From: Klebsormidium nitens
Taxonomy: Eukaryota; Plantae; Klebsormidiophyceae
DNA length: 64,000 nt
Reading direction: 5' to 3'
Assembly (NCBI GenBank): GCA_000708835.1
Contig: DF237028.1
Location: 62,001 to 126,000 of the forward strand
In this document: positions 30,942 to 40,500 of the stretch, in pieces
Position numbering within the stretch: position 1 is the stretch's first letter
Layout of the letters: the number at the start of each line of letters is the position of its first letter
Notes under the pieces: generated by a model
Seen by the model: only the letters and a program-made list of their open reading frames with translations
The model's database searches: none
What the model was told of the DNA's origin: nothing
Program-made: the position numbers and the translations under genes

Positions 30942-31932
30942 TGGTCCACTGCCTTGGCAGACCAGACTCACTAATGTCCTGGTTGTTTTGGCGTTCTATT
31001 ACATGCTCGACCTGCGATGGTCCGAGAATCCGAATGATCACGGATGAAAAGCTTCGGGAGTTTACAAGAAGGTTCAACGTGATCACAAGCAGCGCGGACG
31101 TATATCTGAGTACTTGGCTAGGTCAAATCCGAATGATATGGAACTTGAAGCGCAACCCAACTGGCATTTCACCACGTTAGATTGGTGATTTAACACTGGG
31201 CTGAAAAACTTTCGTCGTCTTTCAACGCGGTGGAACTCGACGATCTGAGCTTGTTTAAGGAGCAGCAAGTCAGCCTTTGCAATTCCATGCCCCATCGCGG
31301 TCCTTGAAAGACCTGGCGCAGCTCTGTCATGGCGTTGTAAAGAGGATGTAGTAGTGCTGGCAGATCAATAACTTGAGGCAGGGTCGCTGAGAAAAGCAGG
31401 GTATGCACATCACCCGCCAGTGACTAAGTTGATATCCCATTTATGAAAGCCCTGAATGAGATGATACGCATGCCCCCATGTTCCGGTGTTGCAAATGAGC
31501 GGCCCTCCCTAGCTGGGGCCTGCATGCGCATCAGACGTCCATGTGGGCCACATGGACGGTAAGTACCTTGTAAATTAACTCATTGGGTCCCGGTACGTAC
31601 CGCTTCGCACAGCATCTGGATGACTTCTGCATGGCAGGAAACAAGAAGGAACCTTGGAAGAAGGACTTGCCACAGGTGACAAAATCCTTAGTTGTTGACA
31701 GTGAGTGGCGCTTCAAGGTGCCGGCGGTCCTGCCGGCGCGCAAGTAAACTTCGTGCACTTTGGAAGTTATTAGTCATTTGAGTTCCTGCAATCTGGATAA
31801 TGCTGGCCGGCTCCATCGACCTGGGCGCACGCTTTGCGAGATCCCTTGCGAGTGGTGGTGGTTTCCGCTGGGTCAATGTCTTGAGAGCACCTACTGTGCA
31901 GAGGCACGAGGCGGGTCCCTGTACCTCGTTCG

Positions 31933-32253
31933 ATGGCCACCCCGCAACTGGTGCAGCAAACCCCCAGCCCCTCCTCCGCGTCTGCCCCAAGCTCTAGCGA
32001 GCAACTGGAACGGCTCTGTCGTCGCTGCAACAAGTACTTCAGCCCTGCTCGCAATTCTCCCCAGTCCTGTCGCTTCCACAGGAAAGAGTTTGTGTGCCGC
32101 TGGCACGACGACCAGCGCCGGTACTATGAGCTGGGGCCGGACGAGCCGCCCTATGCCGCCAAGTTCTACGACTGCTGCAATGCTGAGGACATCAACGCGC
32201 CTGGATGCGCCACCAGCAAGCACATCACTTACGACGATCTAGAGGAAGACTAG
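31933..32253 (+). CDS. Small (106 aa) intronless Cys/His zinc-finger-like protein
   Basis: Clean ATG-TAG ORF with GC3-biased codons. Pattern CRRC...CRFH...YDCC...GC...H; the block FVCRWHDDQRRYYELGPDEPPYAAKFYDCC resembles an uncharacterised conserved plant protein as I recall it. Confidence 0.8.
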   Translation: MATPQLVQQTPSPSSASAPSSSEQLERLCRRCNKYFSPARNSPQSCRFHRKEFVCRWHDDQRRYYELGPDEPPYAAKFYDCCNAEDINAPGCATSKHITYDDLEED

Positions 32254-32330
32254 CTGAAAGAAAGGACGCCGGTTTTTCTCCGTTGTGAAAAAAGCCTCTA
32301 GGTGGGGCGGCCCTGACACGTAGTAGCCCA

Positions 32331-35300
32331 ATGGCCGTTCTATGCGAGACCAACCAGATGTCGCTTGCTCTAGAGAGGCGCATCTTTGCGTCTTCCCCCG
32401 CTGGGCGAGCTATCCCCTGCACGCTGGTCACAGGCTTTCTCGGCTCTGGCAAGACCACCCTCGTCCGGCACATCCTGGCCAGCAAGGGCGACCTCCGCAT
32501 TGCAGTGCTTGTCAACGAGTTTGGCCAAGCCGACATTGACGGCGCCCTTTTAAACACCACCCAAACGAGCGCCTCGCTGGGCATTGCCCCTCCCCGTGCC
32601 CTCTCCCACGGCTGCGCTTGCTGCGACACTAGCGAGGAGTTCCGGGCCGCTGTACGAGGCATGCTAGAGAGCCAGGACGGCTTTGATTACTTGGTGGTCG
32701 AGACCTCGGGGCTGTCGGACCCTCAGCCGATGGCGCACGCGTTAATGGAGCTGGGAGTGCGGCTCGACATGGTTGTGGCGGTAGTGGATGCGGAAGCGCT
32801 GTGTGGCATGCTGGAGAACGAGGTGGCCAGGCGCCAGCTGGCGGCGGCGGACCTGGTGCTCGTCAACAAGTGAGGCTGCAAGACTCTCCAGGGAGGGACG
32901 CTCGATTGTGGTATGTTACCTGCTGGGGAAAGCTGCATTGGTTTGAGTAGACTTTACAAGAAGCGTGAGATTTTTCCACTCTTGCCCAATCCTTTATAGG
33001 AGCTGCCAATGTGCAATTTCAAGGCAGCCATTCGGGTAGGCATTGTACTCGGAAATTTGCTGAAGTGATTGTTGTGAACTTGTCTGAAAGAGCTTTGAAG
33101 GGGCTCAGAATTTTTTCTACCTCTGCCAGAAAGTCCCTCATGGGAAGCTCACAAGAATTGTGGCAACTCCCTTGTCTCGTTAGGGGCTTGTCTCCTAAGG
33201 TTCATAGGCCGGCGGACGGGTAGGGGCCCTACCTGGTCTGGTGGTTAGGGTGGGTAGGGGTGCGGAGCGCGTAAGATTTTTGGGTTAGGATTTTTAGTTG
33301 TGGTGCCCGGCGTTTCTAGATCTTAGGAGGCAAGCCCCTTCGGAGACAAGGGAGCTGCCAGTACCTCACCAGACTCCAGCATTGCTGCCTCTTGCCCTCA
33401 TACCCCCAGGTCTTCTCTGCAGGTGCGATCTGGTGTCTCTGGCTGGCGTCTCTGATGTCGAGGACCGCGTGGAAGCCCTGACAGGGGGAACAAAGGCTGT
33501 GCGCTGCCGCTACTCGCGGGTACCCCTGGAGCTCGTTCTCAACATCGACATTCGGCATGCCACCACTGACGTGGCGCTTGCGACCAACGGGGCAAGTGGC
33601 TACTTGTCGCATGAAAGAGTGAGGACTTCTGTGAAGCTGAAAATGAGGGAACCAGAGGGAGTGCCAGTAAGACGAAGCAAGGCTTTGGGGTTAACCAAGA
33701 TGAACGAAGGTACGAAAAGGATGGCGGGAGGGAATGACAACAATGGGCACTCCGCGCATCTGCCGGGAGGGGCTGTGAGGGATTCTAGTTCGCATCCAGG
33801 GAGTGAAAGCAACCGCCGCTTTGATGAAGCAAGGTGCTCACCAGGTTTCCAGGCGGAACGGGGTTCAAGTTCGCACGCCGGTCCATCGGGTCACGTTCAC
33901 GTGACCCAGTTTGGGTCGACGAGTGTGCATTCGGAGGTGCCCCTGTCTTTGGCTGCCTTCCAGGAGTGGGTGCTGGAGCGGCTTTTGACAGCAGGGGGAG
34001 TGCTGCGGGCCAAGGGCATCGCCTGGTTTGCAGAGGACAGGTAAGGTGCCCCTTCTCAAGACACATGCGTCTCTTATCTGTTCAATACCAGATAGCTGAT
34101 TAAGGACTGCCAGTCGTTCTCGTTTGAGCCTTCGATGCAACACGGGAAATCGACGTTGTACGCGTTTGGACTTGAAGAGCTTTGCTTTCGGCATTCATTT
34201 CAACAAGTCGTTGCCCTTCTTCGCCTACTTATGTAGAGTTCTTGTCGAGAACACCCCCAGGTCAGAGGCGCACATCTTCTGTTACAGCGGAGCAACAAAT
34301 GACTCGAGAATTGGTTTGCCTTCATCCGCATCATGATACCAGTATTTCGCAGATTGTTTTGGAGAATTGTACCCTTCGCTCCTCTTCTTTTCTGTATACG
34401 GCTTCCCTTACGACTCGCGGAGGTCAAACTCCAGCTGACGGTTTTCCCCTCTTCATCGCCAAAGGTTTTCCCCATACCTTCCCGCGCTCCTTGCAGGTCC
34501 CGCCGTTATGTCTTCCAGTACAGTGGCCGCCAGCGTCTGGATTTGCACACCGAGGGGCTCTGGGAGAGCCCGCCCCACACCAGCGTCGTTCTCATCGGCC
34601 GAGACAAGGCCGCGCTGCCAGGTACAATTCCCCAGGCTTGTATTCTAACCCGCTCAGATGATCATTCCTCGTTTCAGCAGGGTTTCGGAATGGGGACTGT
34701 TGCGCAACAGAGGGCTCCTGCGTTATTGACAGCAGCGTGTGTCTTTCTCTTCAATTGTTGTCGTGTTGCCAGAAGGAAGCGTTCGTGGGAAGCCGAGAGG
34801 GTCTAGCTTGCGACCTCTCTTCTTCCATCTAGTTGCATCTTGATCCCTTGATCTGCTTCAAGCCCGGGGCTCTGTACTTGAGAAACTGGGCACAAGACAT
34901 CGTTGGATTCAGTATAATCCTTTCGCAACTCAGTCCAGGTGCAGAAGTTTCTTCTGTTCAGAACCATTACTGACGTCGTGCTTTGGTGCAATACCAGGCC
35001 TGGAATCAACGCTCGAGGTTTGTGCGGACCGCACACTCCAACCGACAGATGAGACGCGTCCTGTGCCACCAAGTCAAGCTTTTCGAGACCTCATGGCGCG
35101 CGACGACCGTTTCAAGGTGCGCCAAACTGCGCCAACCTTGCTCGGTCTGCCTGATATGTTCTGGCAGCTTCGCAGTCTGTCTCCGTGGTAGCGTGCAATT
35201 GTAAGCTCTGGCCTACGGTGTTGTATACACGTCGTCATTAATGTAGAGGGTCCACGTAAAAGACTCCTCTGTCAGACGATTGGAGCGTATCGTACTGTGC

Positions 35301-36601
35301 GCTTAAGTCCTGCATCCCCATTCTCGACATTCATCTTTCTTATCGGATACAACCAATGCTAACAAGACGGCCGTCGAAACAACCGACACTACCGGTGTCT
35401 GGTTGCGAAACGACACAAAAGCAATCCGCGGACTCATTGACTTCCTCTTCTGTCTGACGCCCTTAGTCCAGGTTATCTTACGCACTGTTTTTTGCAGCTG
35501 GTGGCGGCGACCTCTTGCTTTGAAGCGGACACGGCGAGTTCGGCTCCTTTTCGGGATGAAGCTGACACCCTGGTGCGCTTTGTATTGAAGGGCGATGCGC
35601 TCAGAGGGGTCGACCAGGTACGGACTGAGAGCCTACTTGGATCGAACTGTGCAGTTAGCAGCTCATTCGCAGACTGTTCCAGCGAAGCCGTGCCAGGGCG
35701 GATGGGGAAGCCGCTGATCTGTGTATCTGACTGGCGCTGTTTCTCTTGACAAGTTGCTGAGGCCAGTATAGCGTCCATGAAGCCTGCCCGCGCAGATTAG
35801 CTGAGAGGAAGACGCTCGGAAACCCGCCTCTCGTTTTATTTGAGGACTCTTGTTTCCGAGCGGCTGGACGTCCTGCACCGGACTATCTTGCCCTTACCGT
35901 TGTCCTTGCCCGGACGAATCTTGTGTCTTGCTTGACAAACGTTTCATTCATGTGTAAACCAACACCGGATTGCCCGCTCGTAGTGCTGGTCATCAGCGAT
36001 CTTCAAACGAGAACTGGGCACCCCACAGCTCTCCCTGCTTATGCAGGACTTTGGTCAAAACGATCTTGCTTCTCTATCGCTATTTGACCAAAACCGATTT
36101 AGTGACTTGTATGTGCCGTGGGTGCAGAGAGCGCTGACGGAGTCGCTCATTGCGAAAGTGAACGGCCACAGGAAGCTCTTGCTGGCGGCAGTGGACATCC
36201 ATTCAGAAGGTGGGAACTCACTTTCGACGTTCCGCATTTCACTTTCATCAGCAGGAATGTCACGGAGTTTTTGTTTGTTCTCTGTAAGACATCCCGAGCT
36301 TTCATTCGATGGCTTAGCCAAATCGCTTGCCGGTGAGAGTTGCAGCCGGAAGCTTTTTCACTGCCAGTAGTGGAGTTTGTTTCGGAATGCGAGGGTGTAC
36401 AGTAATGATCTTGAAATTGTTCGAGTCGAGCACTCAGTTTATGCCGGAATTTTCGATGCAGGCTGTGTTGCACAAATGGTCCTCGGGCCTGCTGTCAATG
36501 CTGAGGATGCGTGGGCCCTGGTCGCGCAAGAAGCGGGCAAAGCACGGGCAGCGGCCTTCAAGAATATTCACGCCTGCAGGTGCGACTTCACCAGGAGCTA
36601 G
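32331..36601 (+). CDS. COG0523/CobW (ZNG1-like) G3E GTPase metallochaperone with an extra C-terminal domain, 7 exons, about 580 aa
   Basis: Exons 32331-32869, 33423-34040, 34497-34621, 34998-35116, 35498-35617, 36128-36209 and 36462-36601 sum to 1743 nt in phase. Walker A GFLGSGKT, VLVNEFG, GCACC (CxCC), VVETSGLSDP, VNKCD and CobW_C VLRAKGIAWF are present. Confidence 0.92.
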
Positions 36602-37500
36602 CAACTCTCGCCAACAGTTTACATAGAAGCTCCTTGCACGCGACTGTACATAGTCGAGACTCTGCACGCTGACTTTGCTGCTCACCTTTGCAAAGACGCT
36701 ACTTCGTAAAATCAGACTAAAAGTCCTGCGGGCCGATGCAAGACACAGTGCGACGTAGGCCCGCCGGACTTGCAGCGTGCGGCTGTTGTCCATCTATCTG
36801 ATCATGTGGCCGATGGTCTGTTCCGGCATCTGAGCTGCAATCTCAGCGCAAGAACTATAACTCGATCAATCTATCTTCAGTGCCCGGCCAGATATGTCAA
36901 TGCCGCCGCCGCCCCACATGAGCCTTCTGCGTGACATATTGTTGCATTGAACATGTCCGATCAAGTTCGATGCATCCTAATTGGTCACATGTGCGTGCGA
37001 GGTCAGCTCCTGACGTTATGGGAGGGCCGCAGTATAGTTAAGATCTCCACGTATGTCCAATCCCGTGATTCAGGCTCTGGCACACATGGCTGCAGCTAAC
37101 ATGCATGCACGCGGAACAATCAATCAGTAAAGCATGGGTATATTAGAACTTGCGCGACCTTGAATACTGTATACTGTAACGTACTGCACAATATAGGTGA
37201 ATATCAGGTACGTCGGTTCAATACTTGCCAGTTGCTCACTCATTGCTGTATCCTTTGCTTTGCAGAAGTCTGGTGAATTCTGAGGGCTAAAAGAGGCTGA
37301 AAACGGGCGTAGTAATCCGCAAATACGCAATCCTTGTCGATCGAGTCCGTCGCAAGGCCCCTGACTGCTTGTCAAGGCAACCTTGCGGCTGTTTAAAGCT
37401 GAAATGCTATGTGAGTCTCCTACGTATTCAGAATTGTATCGTATGTACAAAATCGATCTTGCGCGCGTCAGTGCCCAACAATATGAATCAGAACCAATAG

Positions 37501-40500
37501 CTACGCTTGGTCATCCGTCTGATCCGCATCGCTAATCTTGACTCGTCGTTCCGTCTTTGTGGCGTCCTCCCGCTTCTCGTAGCTGGCTACCGCTGCTGCC
37601 GCCACCAGGAGCGCCCCGCCCGCCCAGCCCTTGGGGCCGAGCACCTCGTGCAGCAAAAAGAAGCTGAGCAAGGCGTTGAAAAGGGGAGTCGTCGAGTACA
37701 CAATCTGCGCGGCACATGTCGACGAGCTAGGTGAGAAGGGCTCCAAAGGTGATCGTGGAGAATTCGAGAGGGTCCGCAGCTTAAGGATGATCAAAAAGCG
37801 CGCTCGTAGTCAACTGTTCGAACGAGACTGCCGACATGCTCCTTGAAGTCCTCCGGTAGCCATTGGATGAAGCAAAGAACGAACAGCAAACGCAGCAACG
37901 CCTTCGACTTCTGCGAATCATACTCGGCACTCGATTTTCGATACGAACCGTCCCAGCAGGCAAACGTCAGCCGACGAGATTGGCGTCCGGCCGACTCAAA
38001 TTAAGGGCGTGGGCCGAAAATCCGAAAAGCCGACAGAAGCGTGGTGTAGTTGAGCTACGCAGTCTTGTGACAAGCCGACCGGTTCGAGAGCAGTCGGCCT
38101 CGGAGCGGACAATCGAATCTCCATATCAAACGCTTTGAGTCGGCACGGACCACGACAGACCGACACAATTTCGATTTCTAAACGGACGCCAACATAGACG
38201 GACATTGGGTGGGACAAATGATTCAGTCACCAACAGATCCTTCACGAGGACGCTCTCCGTTCGGATCTAGCAGCAATGAACCGCGCCAAACAAGAAACCT
38301 GTCTACTCATAAAATGAAGTCCTGACCTGCGCCTCTGCGGCAGGAACGGTCCTCTGGCCGACCGCCATGATCAGCGACGCAAGCGCCCCGGGGAAGAGCG
38401 ACGAGTACAGAATTACTCCCCACAACAGGGGGCTGTCCCAGCCCTCCCACGAGGGTTGTGGGGGCCCCCCCAAAGCGAGCGAGGACCCCCAGTCCCAGCC
38501 CATCCAAAGGAGCCCAAGGCCAACGCCCACAACCATCTTGGCGGCGGTGAGTGCCAAGGCGGGCAATCGCTGCGCATGCACGCCCAAACGGACCTGAGCA
38601 GATAGGAAGAATCCTCAGAATCCCACTTTCCGACGGTGTCGGCTTTTCCAGTGTTGAGCATTCTGTGCGTCTAGGTTTGTGGAAGCTTTAGCAACCACTT
38701 TGCAGCGGTGTTGGACGTTTGGGCTGTTGCATGTGTCGTTTGATTTGGTGGTCCAGTGGTTGCTTGTACGAAGCTGGTGTTGGCTTGGTGGAAAAAGGGA
38801 TAAAACAAACGACTGGGTCTCGAAGATCTAGAGGGGCGTCAGCGGCATGCATTCGACAAGTGAAGGAAACGGAGAGTGTGATTTTGACATCCGAGTCGAA
38901 GGGTCAGACACAAGGCCTTGCTCTCGTTATCGATGCTGCAAGAGCGGAATACGTGACGAAGAAGGAAGCAAATGGCAGGGAGAATATGGCCCGACACCCT
39001 ACGAAACGATGATCCGGTTTGGGACACTCGAAGTTCCTTCGAGAAGGAAACAAGATAACGCAACCACCTAGCGCCTACATTAGCTGAATCACTTCCTATA
39101 CGCTGCAAGAGGAACGGGGACACATTGAGATTGGAAGACCTTGGCTCAAGCAAGGTTCAAAACAGGCATCGCTACAAAGTCCCCAACCATACTTGAAGTG
39201 GCCTTTCCGAAAACGAAATCTTTGACAAGACCTCGTCCTGACGTTTGAGCACGCAAGAGCTTCTCTTGATTGGACCCGACGTTCTGCAGCGGCACCCCGC
39301 CTCGGCTCACCGTAAACATGGCGTAGCAGAAGGCTGACGCCAGCAGGTACGCGTCCCCCACTACACTCCCCTCGGCGGTGCCAGCGCTTTCGTTGGAGCT
39401 CAGGAGAAGAACCCCCGCAATGCAGAGAGGAACGGCGACTAGCATACTCTTGCGCACGGGCTGCCCTGAGGCCAGCAGGATGGCCGGAACCAGAACGTTG
39501 ACAGTCTGAATCAGGAAGCCCGCCTGCGTGGCGGTGGTCTCCTGCAGGCCCATCATCTGCAGCAGAAGGAGGGGACGAGTGACGTCAAGGTGTCGTATGG
39601 GTGACGTCAGGTGAGGGCTCGAGGCAACTTCGAGGGCGTGGTGCTGCATTCGGAAGGGTTTGGAATGAAAAGTAGAGGAGATACCAAATGATCCTCGTGT
39701 TTCAGACGACGAGCTCTGAGATGATGTCAGCCTGGTTCGCAGATCGATTTAGTGCTGTAGTGGACGAACATTGGGAAACTGAAAGCAAAACGGAACAGTG
39801 GTAGTCTGTGGACCTTGCAAAGCCTAGCACGAAGCCCGCCATAGATCTAGCTTCTCTCAAAGCATCCAACCAAAGCAAACTCCTGAGAATGTTCTAGACT
39901 TACAGATAACAGCCAGTCAACTCACCTCGCTCTCGAATCCATTCCTTGGCCAGTCTTCCGGTGACTTTCAAACTTCAAAGAGGTCTCAAGTTCAACACAC
40001 CTCCTTCGTACTGAAACAGTCAAACTCGTGCTTGGCGAGCTTCCCACCTGGAGTGCGGTGCCAACAGTGTTCCAGAACCCCAGCTCAGCGCCCGCGAGCC
40101 AAGTGCCTGGGGGAAACCCCCAGGCGCGCCATAGGCTGCTGTCGCTCTCTGATGCTTCAGCAGCTGGTTGGGACTGGGACTGAGCTCTTTCGACGGGCAG
40201 GACGGCAGCATAAGCGACCACGGACAAGGCTGTAGAGACAAGCATCACCGTCAGCCTACACAGAGCTTTGGCTCGACGAATTTAGGTAAACTGTAACCTG
40301 GGGCGAAGGGGCGTTTCAGCTCGTGAAAAAGATGGCTTCCAAACCTTGATGATGTGAGACTGAATGGAACAGACAGACACAAGCATCAAAGAGTGCGAAG
40401 TCTTTCTCACCTGATCGCAATGTGGTCAGGATGCTGACAGACGGTGGCCCTGGGTTTTCGTAGATGTACTTGATGGCTGGGCCATACGTACCTGGTGTAT

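Follow-up and report, generated by a model that had tools for sequence, protein, structure and literature searches.

A COG0523 GTPase of Klebsormidium nitens with a C-terminal domain very probably related to the small domain of pyridoxal-phosphate decarboxylases

The COG0523 metallochaperones form a large family, yet only a few of them have known clients, and what determines client specificity is an open question. The gene KFL_000790210 of the streptophyte alga Klebsormidium nitens encodes a member of this family. It lies in a 64,000-nucleotide stretch of contig DF237028.1 (assembly GCA_000708835.1, positions 62,001 to 126,000; hereafter called the window), to which a compared segment of 8.5 kb of the window is 100% identical, and its product continues beyond the CobW_C domain into a further domain of ~125 amino acids, encoded by exons 4-7. 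A first-pass annotation, made from the DNA letters alone, had described this gene as a CobW/ZNG1 metallochaperone to which the small domain of a pyridoxal 5′-phosphate (PLP) decarboxylase of group II is apparently fused as an orphan. Is the fusion real, what is the added domain, and what might it contribute to a metallochaperone?

Read from the window sequence, KFL_000790210 consists of seven exons at 32331-36601 on the forward strand (Table 1). Its six introns all have GT..AG borders and consistent phases, and a single frame runs across 1743 nt, or 580 codons including the stop. The segment singled out by the first-pass annotation, 34998-36601, extends exactly from the start of exon 4 to the stop codon, and the peptides quoted from it are present. 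Transcript evidence was obtained from contigs of four runs, originating from four studies, which were placed on positions 31700-37400. The six introns are excised at the modelled sites in all four runs, providing at RNA level the junction check that had been proposed for this gene, and contig depth is 25-390 over the exons and 0-15 over the introns. As excision at the GT..AG borders is exact, these contig runs, which beforehand had only been guessed to be RNA, are indeed RNA. Two single contigs of 2633 and 2632 nt, from different studies, reach from ~31700 to ~36840 and contain all seven exons with 0 mismatches. The public protein of this gene (P0166, 571 amino acids, whose residue numbers are used below) likewise contains all exon peptides in order, with a single residue between exons at split codons.

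A sceptic might hold that exons 4-7 form a separate gene, or that the fusion is an artefact of annotation or assembly; the first-pass annotation had itself reckoned with transcripts ending after exon 3. Beforehand, this reading could appeal to a set of short exons without a Pfam match, and we have found nothing else in its favour. It is contradicted by the single contigs of two runs that cover exons 1-7, by the six joints seen in four studies, and by the presence of the fusion in more than 50 proteins of independent genomic or transcriptomic origin, described below. Furthermore, whereas the Klebsormidium gene has six introns, its orthologue in Chara braunii (BFEA01000011.1) is intronless and forms one uninterrupted 570-codon open reading frame (ORF), and the fusion is therefore not an artefact of the splicing model. 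The spanning contigs and the uninterrupted Chara ORF refute a separate gene or an artefact, to which we assign next to no probability, and the union of a CobW protein with the decarboxylase-like domain in one expressed gene is real, practically beyond doubt.

The protein ahead of residue 427 is wholly covered by CobW domains and a low-complexity linker. Pfam family PF02492 matches residues 20-195 (E 1.1e-43) and PF07683, the CobW_C domain, residues 335-426 (E 2.1e-12); CobW_C is also recognised on exon 2 by itself (PF07683, E 3.5e-5, exon residues 164-204). The Walker A, CxCC, Walker B and NKxD motifs, which are nearly invariant in the family alignment (A3), can all be read in the window, and the R, K and G of the RxKG motif of CobW_C are invariant in the same alignment. 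In the bacterial proteins ZigA and MigC, RxKG is an arginine finger contributed by CobW_C (2026 preprint, PMC13001444). The product of KFL_000790210 is a complete COG0523 GTPase core followed by CobW_C with RxKG, and on account of these intact motifs we take it to be a working GTP-dependent metallochaperone. The more specific label ZNG1, given by the first-pass annotation, finds no support. The NCBIfam scores of the protein fall well short of the cut-offs for CobW (140 bits vs 332), PRK11537 (YjiA-type; 108 vs 361) and ZigA (107 vs 600), a comparison that covers these three types, ZNG1 having no model of its own in the profile libraries searched.

The added domain is unannotated in Pfam and NCBIfam. 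No Pfam match was obtained for exons 4-7 in an exon-by-exon scan, or for the extra domain of four orthologues. Against NCBIfam, the domain returned only a chance row for benzoylformate decarboxylase (E 0.003), which was rejected as this is an unrelated thiamine diphosphate (ThDP) enzyme and the match lies far below the cut-off. Exon-by-exon phmmer searches of PDB sequences gave nothing apart from a chance haemoglobin match, and a word-index search with the Chara domain retrieved the query itself only. Single-sequence searches thus yield no decarboxylase, and a link to these enzymes requires a profile or a structural model.

Profiles provide this link. A domain profile (A2) was built from 23 sequences, with no decarboxylase and no window protein among them. 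When it was compared with all PDB sequences, the best match was to residues 386-477 of human AADC (E 2.8e-8), followed by pig DDC (5.6e-7), fly DDC (2.4e-6), Catharanthus TDC (2.6e-6), Arabidopsis PAAS (4e-6), rice TDC (8e-5) and human HDC (1.6e-3); Rhodiola 4-HPAA synthase and poppy TyDC were also matched. The top 14 PDB matches are all decarboxylases, with the first other family at E 0.15, and all of their alignments fall inside the C-terminal small domain (chain residues 382-513 for the seven enzymes listed with E values, 382-524 overall). Two disjoint sub-profiles, one of streptophyte sequences only, including the window protein, and one of chlorophyte and protist sequences, also retrieved decarboxylases (E 1.4e-6 and 1.3e-6, respectively). 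In all three decarboxylase-free profiles, noise begins at E 0.15-0.5. Motifs common to the domain and the decarboxylases include D-x-R-F, hydrophobic-F-x-L-x-G, L-N-x-x-L...N and a Trp in the final helix. The four blocks that the first-pass annotation had compared with AADC-type enzymes occupy the same profile positions, in the same order, in AADC and P0166.

Structure prediction led to the same enzymes. An AlphaFold2 model of the domain of an Iris orthologue, computed with the family alignment, has a mean predicted local distance difference test (pLDDT) score of 86.4 and an alpha-beta-alpha-beta-beta-alpha order of elements. The first 41 PDB matches of this model in Foldseek are all group II decarboxylases, aligned over 77 columns with a root-mean-square deviation (rmsd) of 1.7 Å and 22-32% identity. 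VIA-align superimposes residues 27-105 of the model on AADC 405-480 with Z 9.1 and rmsd 2.0 Å over 72 residues, at 25% identity. A shape search of the ESM Atlas returned a PF00282 family or a fragment cluster named as a decarboxylase in every row; a feature search of the same atlas gave aminotransferase and PF00282 fragments with scores of 0.89-0.92 and was uninformative. The window protein is tied to the Iris structure through the family hidden Markov model (HMM) of the domain. Profiles, predicted structure and block positions are in agreement with the earlier suggestion of an orphan decarboxylase small domain, down to the structural match to a fold-type I small domain, and the extra domain is very probably a homologue, over the full length, of the small domain at the C-terminus of group II (AADC-type) PLP decarboxylases.

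The rest of such an enzyme is missing. PF00282 gives no match on P0166 or any of its exons at E up to 10, and a PLP-binding large domain was found neither in the protein nor in the annotated neighbour genes, as the first-pass annotation had stated. Lacking a PLP-binding large domain, the protein cannot be a decarboxylase.

How widespread is this architecture? A full-library search with exon 1 retrieved COG0523 proteins, many of the best matches being 480-730 amino acids long. The C-terminal regions of these proteins can be aligned among themselves, and they also correspond in blocks to exons 4, 5, 6 and 7. A domain HMM built without P0166 matches that protein at residues 445-570 (HMM 13-137) with 79.4 bits and E 1.4e-26. 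With the HMM of other species only, a six-frame scan of the whole window placed exons 7 (E 6e-7), 5 (0.0095), 6 (0.0098) and 4 (0.095) as its top four matches, in colinear arrangement. In total, 68 matches to the domain HMM were obtained, near-identical cluster members included, and more than 50 COG0523 proteins carry the same domain after CobW_C. They come from streptophyte algae (Chara, Klebsormidium, Mesotaenium, Spirogloea, Chlorokybus), land plants (a liverwort, a lycophyte, a fern, Amborella, Aristolochia, Vanilla, Iris), chlorophytes (Chlamydomonas, Volvox, Edaphochlamys, Pleodorina, Sanguina), the chlorarachniophyte Amorphochlora, the oomycete Aphanomyces, and MMETSP and environmental eukaryotes. 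Precomputed annotation of these proteins lists PF02492 and PF07683 only. The architecture had seemed unfamiliar at first sight; the domain is indeed unannotated, but the layout is not unique to Klebsormidium and was already present in public protein sets.

The relationships within this family were analysed in a FastTree tree that includes 50 distinct domain-bearing proteins of at least 300 amino acids, calculated from the GTPase and CobW_C parts with the extra domain removed. The best split gathers 46 of the 50 domain-bearing proteins, together with five whose ends are apparently truncated or mis-modelled. Presence of the domain changes 9 times on this tree, compared with 45 times in shuffles, and P0166 falls into two starred sets, one of 18 rows (17 domain-bearing) and one of 29 rows (28 domain-bearing). 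Eukaryotic COG0523 proteins with the four-part layout thus form a single, mostly coherent clade. Given such a clade, it is most likely that the fusion arose once, by capture of the 3′ end of a decarboxylase gene, and was then retained; the tree fits one old fusion without proving it. Among the matches listed, the closest G-domains after the domain-bearing family are those of cyanobacterial CobW-family proteins (Phormidium, Leptolyngbya, Nostoc, Anabaenopsis, Nodularia), which might point to a plastid origin of the GTPase part.

The same range of organisms has been described before from a different angle. Zhang et al. (2023, PMC10642216) report, in a similarity network of nucleotide-dependent metallochaperones, a small and uncharacterised 'cluster 4' with members from Charales, Klebsormidiales, Marchantiales, Polypodiales and some angiosperms, and with related chlorophyte and protist proteins. 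This streptophyte cluster is placed apart from ZNG1 and ZNG2, and is patchily conserved in land plants, most eudicots having lost the whole gene. Judged by the taxon list alone, the family described here is probably this 'cluster 4'; the taxa match, whereas neither an accession nor an extra C-terminal domain is mentioned in the paper's text as read. In the literature searched, no paper was found that ties CobW or COG0523 to a decarboxylase domain. The identification of the domain appears to be new, as does the recognition of a broad and old family defined by this domain and by the Cys-x-Cys (CxC) end of its members.

This end is one of two additions to the small domain. The alignment with AADC reaches no further than the last helix, whereas the family continues for ~12 more residues to a CxC motif. 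Of the 61 members with a complete C-terminus, 60 have this motif, which does not occur in the decarboxylases. It is often preceded by His or a third Cys, and often followed by Asp. The second addition is a conserved family-specific loop, P-L-x-G-I, of ~7 residues, which is inserted after the first strand and is absent from decarboxylases. The first-pass annotation had proposed an extra metal site at the terminus, and the retention of CxC in all but one of the complete members lends support to this idea; metal binding itself we infer, and from sequence conservation we rate the chances that the tail acts as a metal site as even.

These patterns also bear on whether the domain could be a decaying, functionless relic of an old gene fusion. 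Its unannotated status, the variable loop encoded by exon 5 and the loss of the whole gene in some lineages, including the loss in most eudicots mentioned above, could be taken as signs of decay. They stand against recognisable motifs preserved from oomycetes and chlorarachniophytes to angiosperms, the nearly universal CxC end and a confident AlphaFold model, and we regard a relic as very unlikely.

We therefore considered how such a protein might work. The COG0523 core would act as a GTP-driven metallochaperone, like other members of its family. The borrowed small domain would serve as a rigid scaffold or docking surface, a role that we propose tentatively and at somewhat less than even chances; client docking or ligand sensing had been put forward as a candidate role in the first-pass annotation. 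This scaffold would present the flexible CxC tail, which, with a nearby His or Cys and Asp, would form a second thiolate metal site, and this site would exchange metal with the CxCC site or hand it over to a client. Flexible terminal metal-transfer motifs include the C-terminal CXC of the copper chaperone CCS, whose mode of action the proposed transfer would closely resemble, and the His/Cys-rich tails of UreE, HypB and SlyD. The Klebsormidium tail is alike in being a short terminal Cys/His motif, but the folds are unrelated, and a transfer role for CxC is drawn by analogy. Taken as a whole, a metallochaperone with a captured small domain as scaffold and CxC as second metal site is the explanation that we favour, and one that we consider fairly probable.

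Alternatively, the domain may have kept its ancestral mode of interaction. Its docking partner would then be a fold-type I PLP enzyme, contacted at the large domain; a decarboxylase that lacks its own small domain, or in which that domain is displaced, would be one example. In this case the GTPase would regulate or mature the enzyme and would not act as a metal carrier only. Retention of the whole small domain from first to last helix (AADC 386-477), and conservation of the core motifs among very distant eukaryotes, would be in keeping with such docking. However, no PLP enzyme adjoins the gene in Klebsormidium, Chara or Chlamydomonas schloesseri, and the added loop and CxC tail point to a new role; we consider docking of this kind improbable. 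The wider proposal, in which the assembly or activity of a PLP-dependent decarboxylase would be linked to metal and GTP state through this ancient GTPase family, is slightly less probable still. Recognition of fold-type I large domains by the small domain, if it still occurs, would connect metal homeostasis directly with amine or amino-acid metabolism, and would make this the first PLP-enzyme small domain to act in trans.

Several observations weigh against our favoured explanation of a captured decarboxylase small domain in a metallochaperone, or limit its reach. When residues 436-571 of P0166 are used alone in a phmmer search of the PDB, only chance DARPin and ExoS rows appear, and no decarboxylase. 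In exon 6, the Klebsormidium protein has Thr (residue ~504, in 'ALTESL'; 36137-36139) at a position where the family has a near-invariant Asn ('LN..L'), as do the decarboxylases. Both structural models, of the domain and of the full length, are of the Iris orthologue and not of the Klebsormidium protein. The full-length model has a pLDDT of 77 and a predicted template modelling (pTM) score of 0.70, with three domains confident, yet its CxC tail falls below a pLDDT of 50. The tree requires 9 changes of the domain label and not 1, and the metallochaperone role of the family is itself a predicted one. Finally, the fold is a common alpha/beta sandwich according to the model, and its shape alone is no proof of kinship. 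In a search independent of Foldseek, the best decarboxylase reached Z 7.9, against Z 7.6 for an unrelated sandwich, the N-terminal metal-binding extension of CzcP (4u9r), and Z 7.2 for another, Mrp subunit E; the search tool itself remarks that Z 7-8 is a common best score.

This last observation is an argument for convergence, namely that the resemblance reflects a generic ferredoxin-like alpha/beta sandwich, as found in many metal-binding domains, without common ancestry. Unrelated sandwiches do score nearly as high. Nonetheless, structure-based identity to the domain is 25-29% for the decarboxylases and 3-15% for the other sandwiches, and three profiles free of decarboxylases rank only group II decarboxylases first (E 1e-6 to 3e-8), in the small domain only. 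As shape alone is insufficient, kinship with decarboxylases rests on these sequence profiles, and convergence seems to us distinctly unlikely.

Comparison with known systems delimits what is unusual about the Klebsormidium protein. It has the Walker A, CxCC, Walker B and NKxD motifs and the RxKG of CobW_C in common with COG0523 GTPases such as ZNG1, ZigA, YjiA, YeiR and CobW; these end at CobW_C or in a His-rich tail, whereas the Klebsormidium protein adds a decarboxylase-type domain and a CxC tail. With group II decarboxylases (AADC/DDC, HDC and plant TDC/TyDC/PAAS; PDB 3rbf, 1js3, 3k40, 6eew, 6eei and 4e1o) it shares the fold of the small domain from first to last helix, but it lacks their N-terminal domain, PLP-binding large domain and Schiff-base lysine. 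There is a precedent in Chlamydomonas, where CBP1/ZNG3 consists of CobW, CobW_C and a WW domain, the latter an interaction domain added at the C-terminus of an algal COG0523 protein and tying it to a specific partner (PMC12891040, PMC13368412). CBP1/ZNG3 differs in having WW instead of a decarboxylase small domain, belongs to another clade and is restricted to Chlorophyceae and Trebouxiophyceae.

A eukaryotic COG0523 subfamily can now be defined by an accessory module, which consists of a small domain very probably exapted from a PLP decarboxylase and a near-invariant CxC end. It would be an unusual instance of a small domain of fold type I that persists without its catalytic domain. For experiments, the subfamily offers a handle in the domain, the tail and their partners, with an orthologue available in Chlamydomonas (C. 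reinhardtii XP_001703275.1), and the domain is an annotation target for database curators. The long-standing question of client specificity is not yet answered in this way, and the function of the subfamily is one that we infer.

Table 1. Coordinates of KFL_000790210 and adjoining features in the window. HMM positions refer to the domain HMM.
Feature	Position	Strand	Remarks
Exon 1	32331-32869	+	COG0523 GTPase G-domain; Pfam PF02492 E 2e-39
Walker A GFLGSGKT	32433-32456	+	Exon 1
Metal motif GCACC	32610-32624	+	Exon 1; CxCC type
Walker B VETSG	32697-32711	+	Exon 1
Exon 2	33423-34040	+	Rest of NKCD (split codon), low-complexity linker, start of CobW_C
RAKG	34006-34017	+	Exon 2; RxKG arginine-finger motif of CobW_C
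Exon 3	34497-34621	+	Middle of CobW_C; PF07683 profile positions 44-80
Exon 4	34998-35116	+	Final 7 residues of CobW_C, 18-residue linker, first helix of decarboxylase-like domain from 35075
Helix AFRDLMARDDRFK	35078-35116	+	Exon 4; HMM positions 13-26, the same positions being met by human AADC from residue 386
Exon 5	35498-35617	+	Variable loop, first strand, family-specific loop 'ALRGV'; HMM positions 15-60
LVRFVLKG	35570-35593	+	Exon 5; first strand of domain, from domain-family alignment
Exon 6	36128-36209	+	Second helix LTESLIAKVN (36134-36163), next strand; HMM positions 62-91
Exon 7	36462-36601	+	Last strand, final helix, tail, TAG stop (36599-36601); HMM positions 96-137
AWALVAQEA	36509-36535	+	Exon 7; final helix of domain with conserved Trp
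HACRCD tail	36569-36586	+	Exon 7; C-terminal Cys-x-Cys
3′ untranslated region	36602-36886	+	Contig ends at 36839-36886 in four runs
Cys/His-rich ORF	31933-32253	+	106 amino acids
Inverted repeat in intron 1	33161-33360		39 nt, MITE-like
EamA-type transporter gene	~37501-38600	-	Convergent, downstream

The public model of KFL_000790210 is the seven-exon model begun at the second ATG, at 32358. The upstream in-frame ATG at 32331 adds nine residues, MAVLCETNQ, and it is preferred here because the 'NQ' ahead of 'MSLA' is conserved in the orthologues of Chara, a fern, a liverwort and Mesotaenium. On the basis of this conservation, the annotated start is probably nine codons late.

The gene order around this locus in K. 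nitens is PfkB, a small ORF, the CobW gene and, on the opposite strand, EamA; DAO is also an annotated neighbour. The Cys/His-rich ORF ends 77 nt upstream of the ATG at 32331 and shares its spliced contigs with the CobW gene (start ~31700, ~2.63 kb, two studies). The two may share a dicistronic mRNA, or these contigs may be assemblies of overlapping transcripts. The ORF has a weak match to the BTK zinc motif (E 7.7e-4, below the cut-off), and the public annotation at this place gives a product of 154 amino acids. It was considered as a conserved partner of the CobW gene and rejected, as it adjoins the CobW orthologue in neither Chara nor C. schloesseri.

Finally, the two arms of the inverted repeat in intron 1, which resembles a miniature inverted-repeat transposable element (MITE), are 87% complementary and 122 nt apart. 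In all four runs, many contigs match only the core of this repeat (~33234-33275) and then continue into other sequence, which indicates that further copies of the element exist and are transcribed at other places in the genome.

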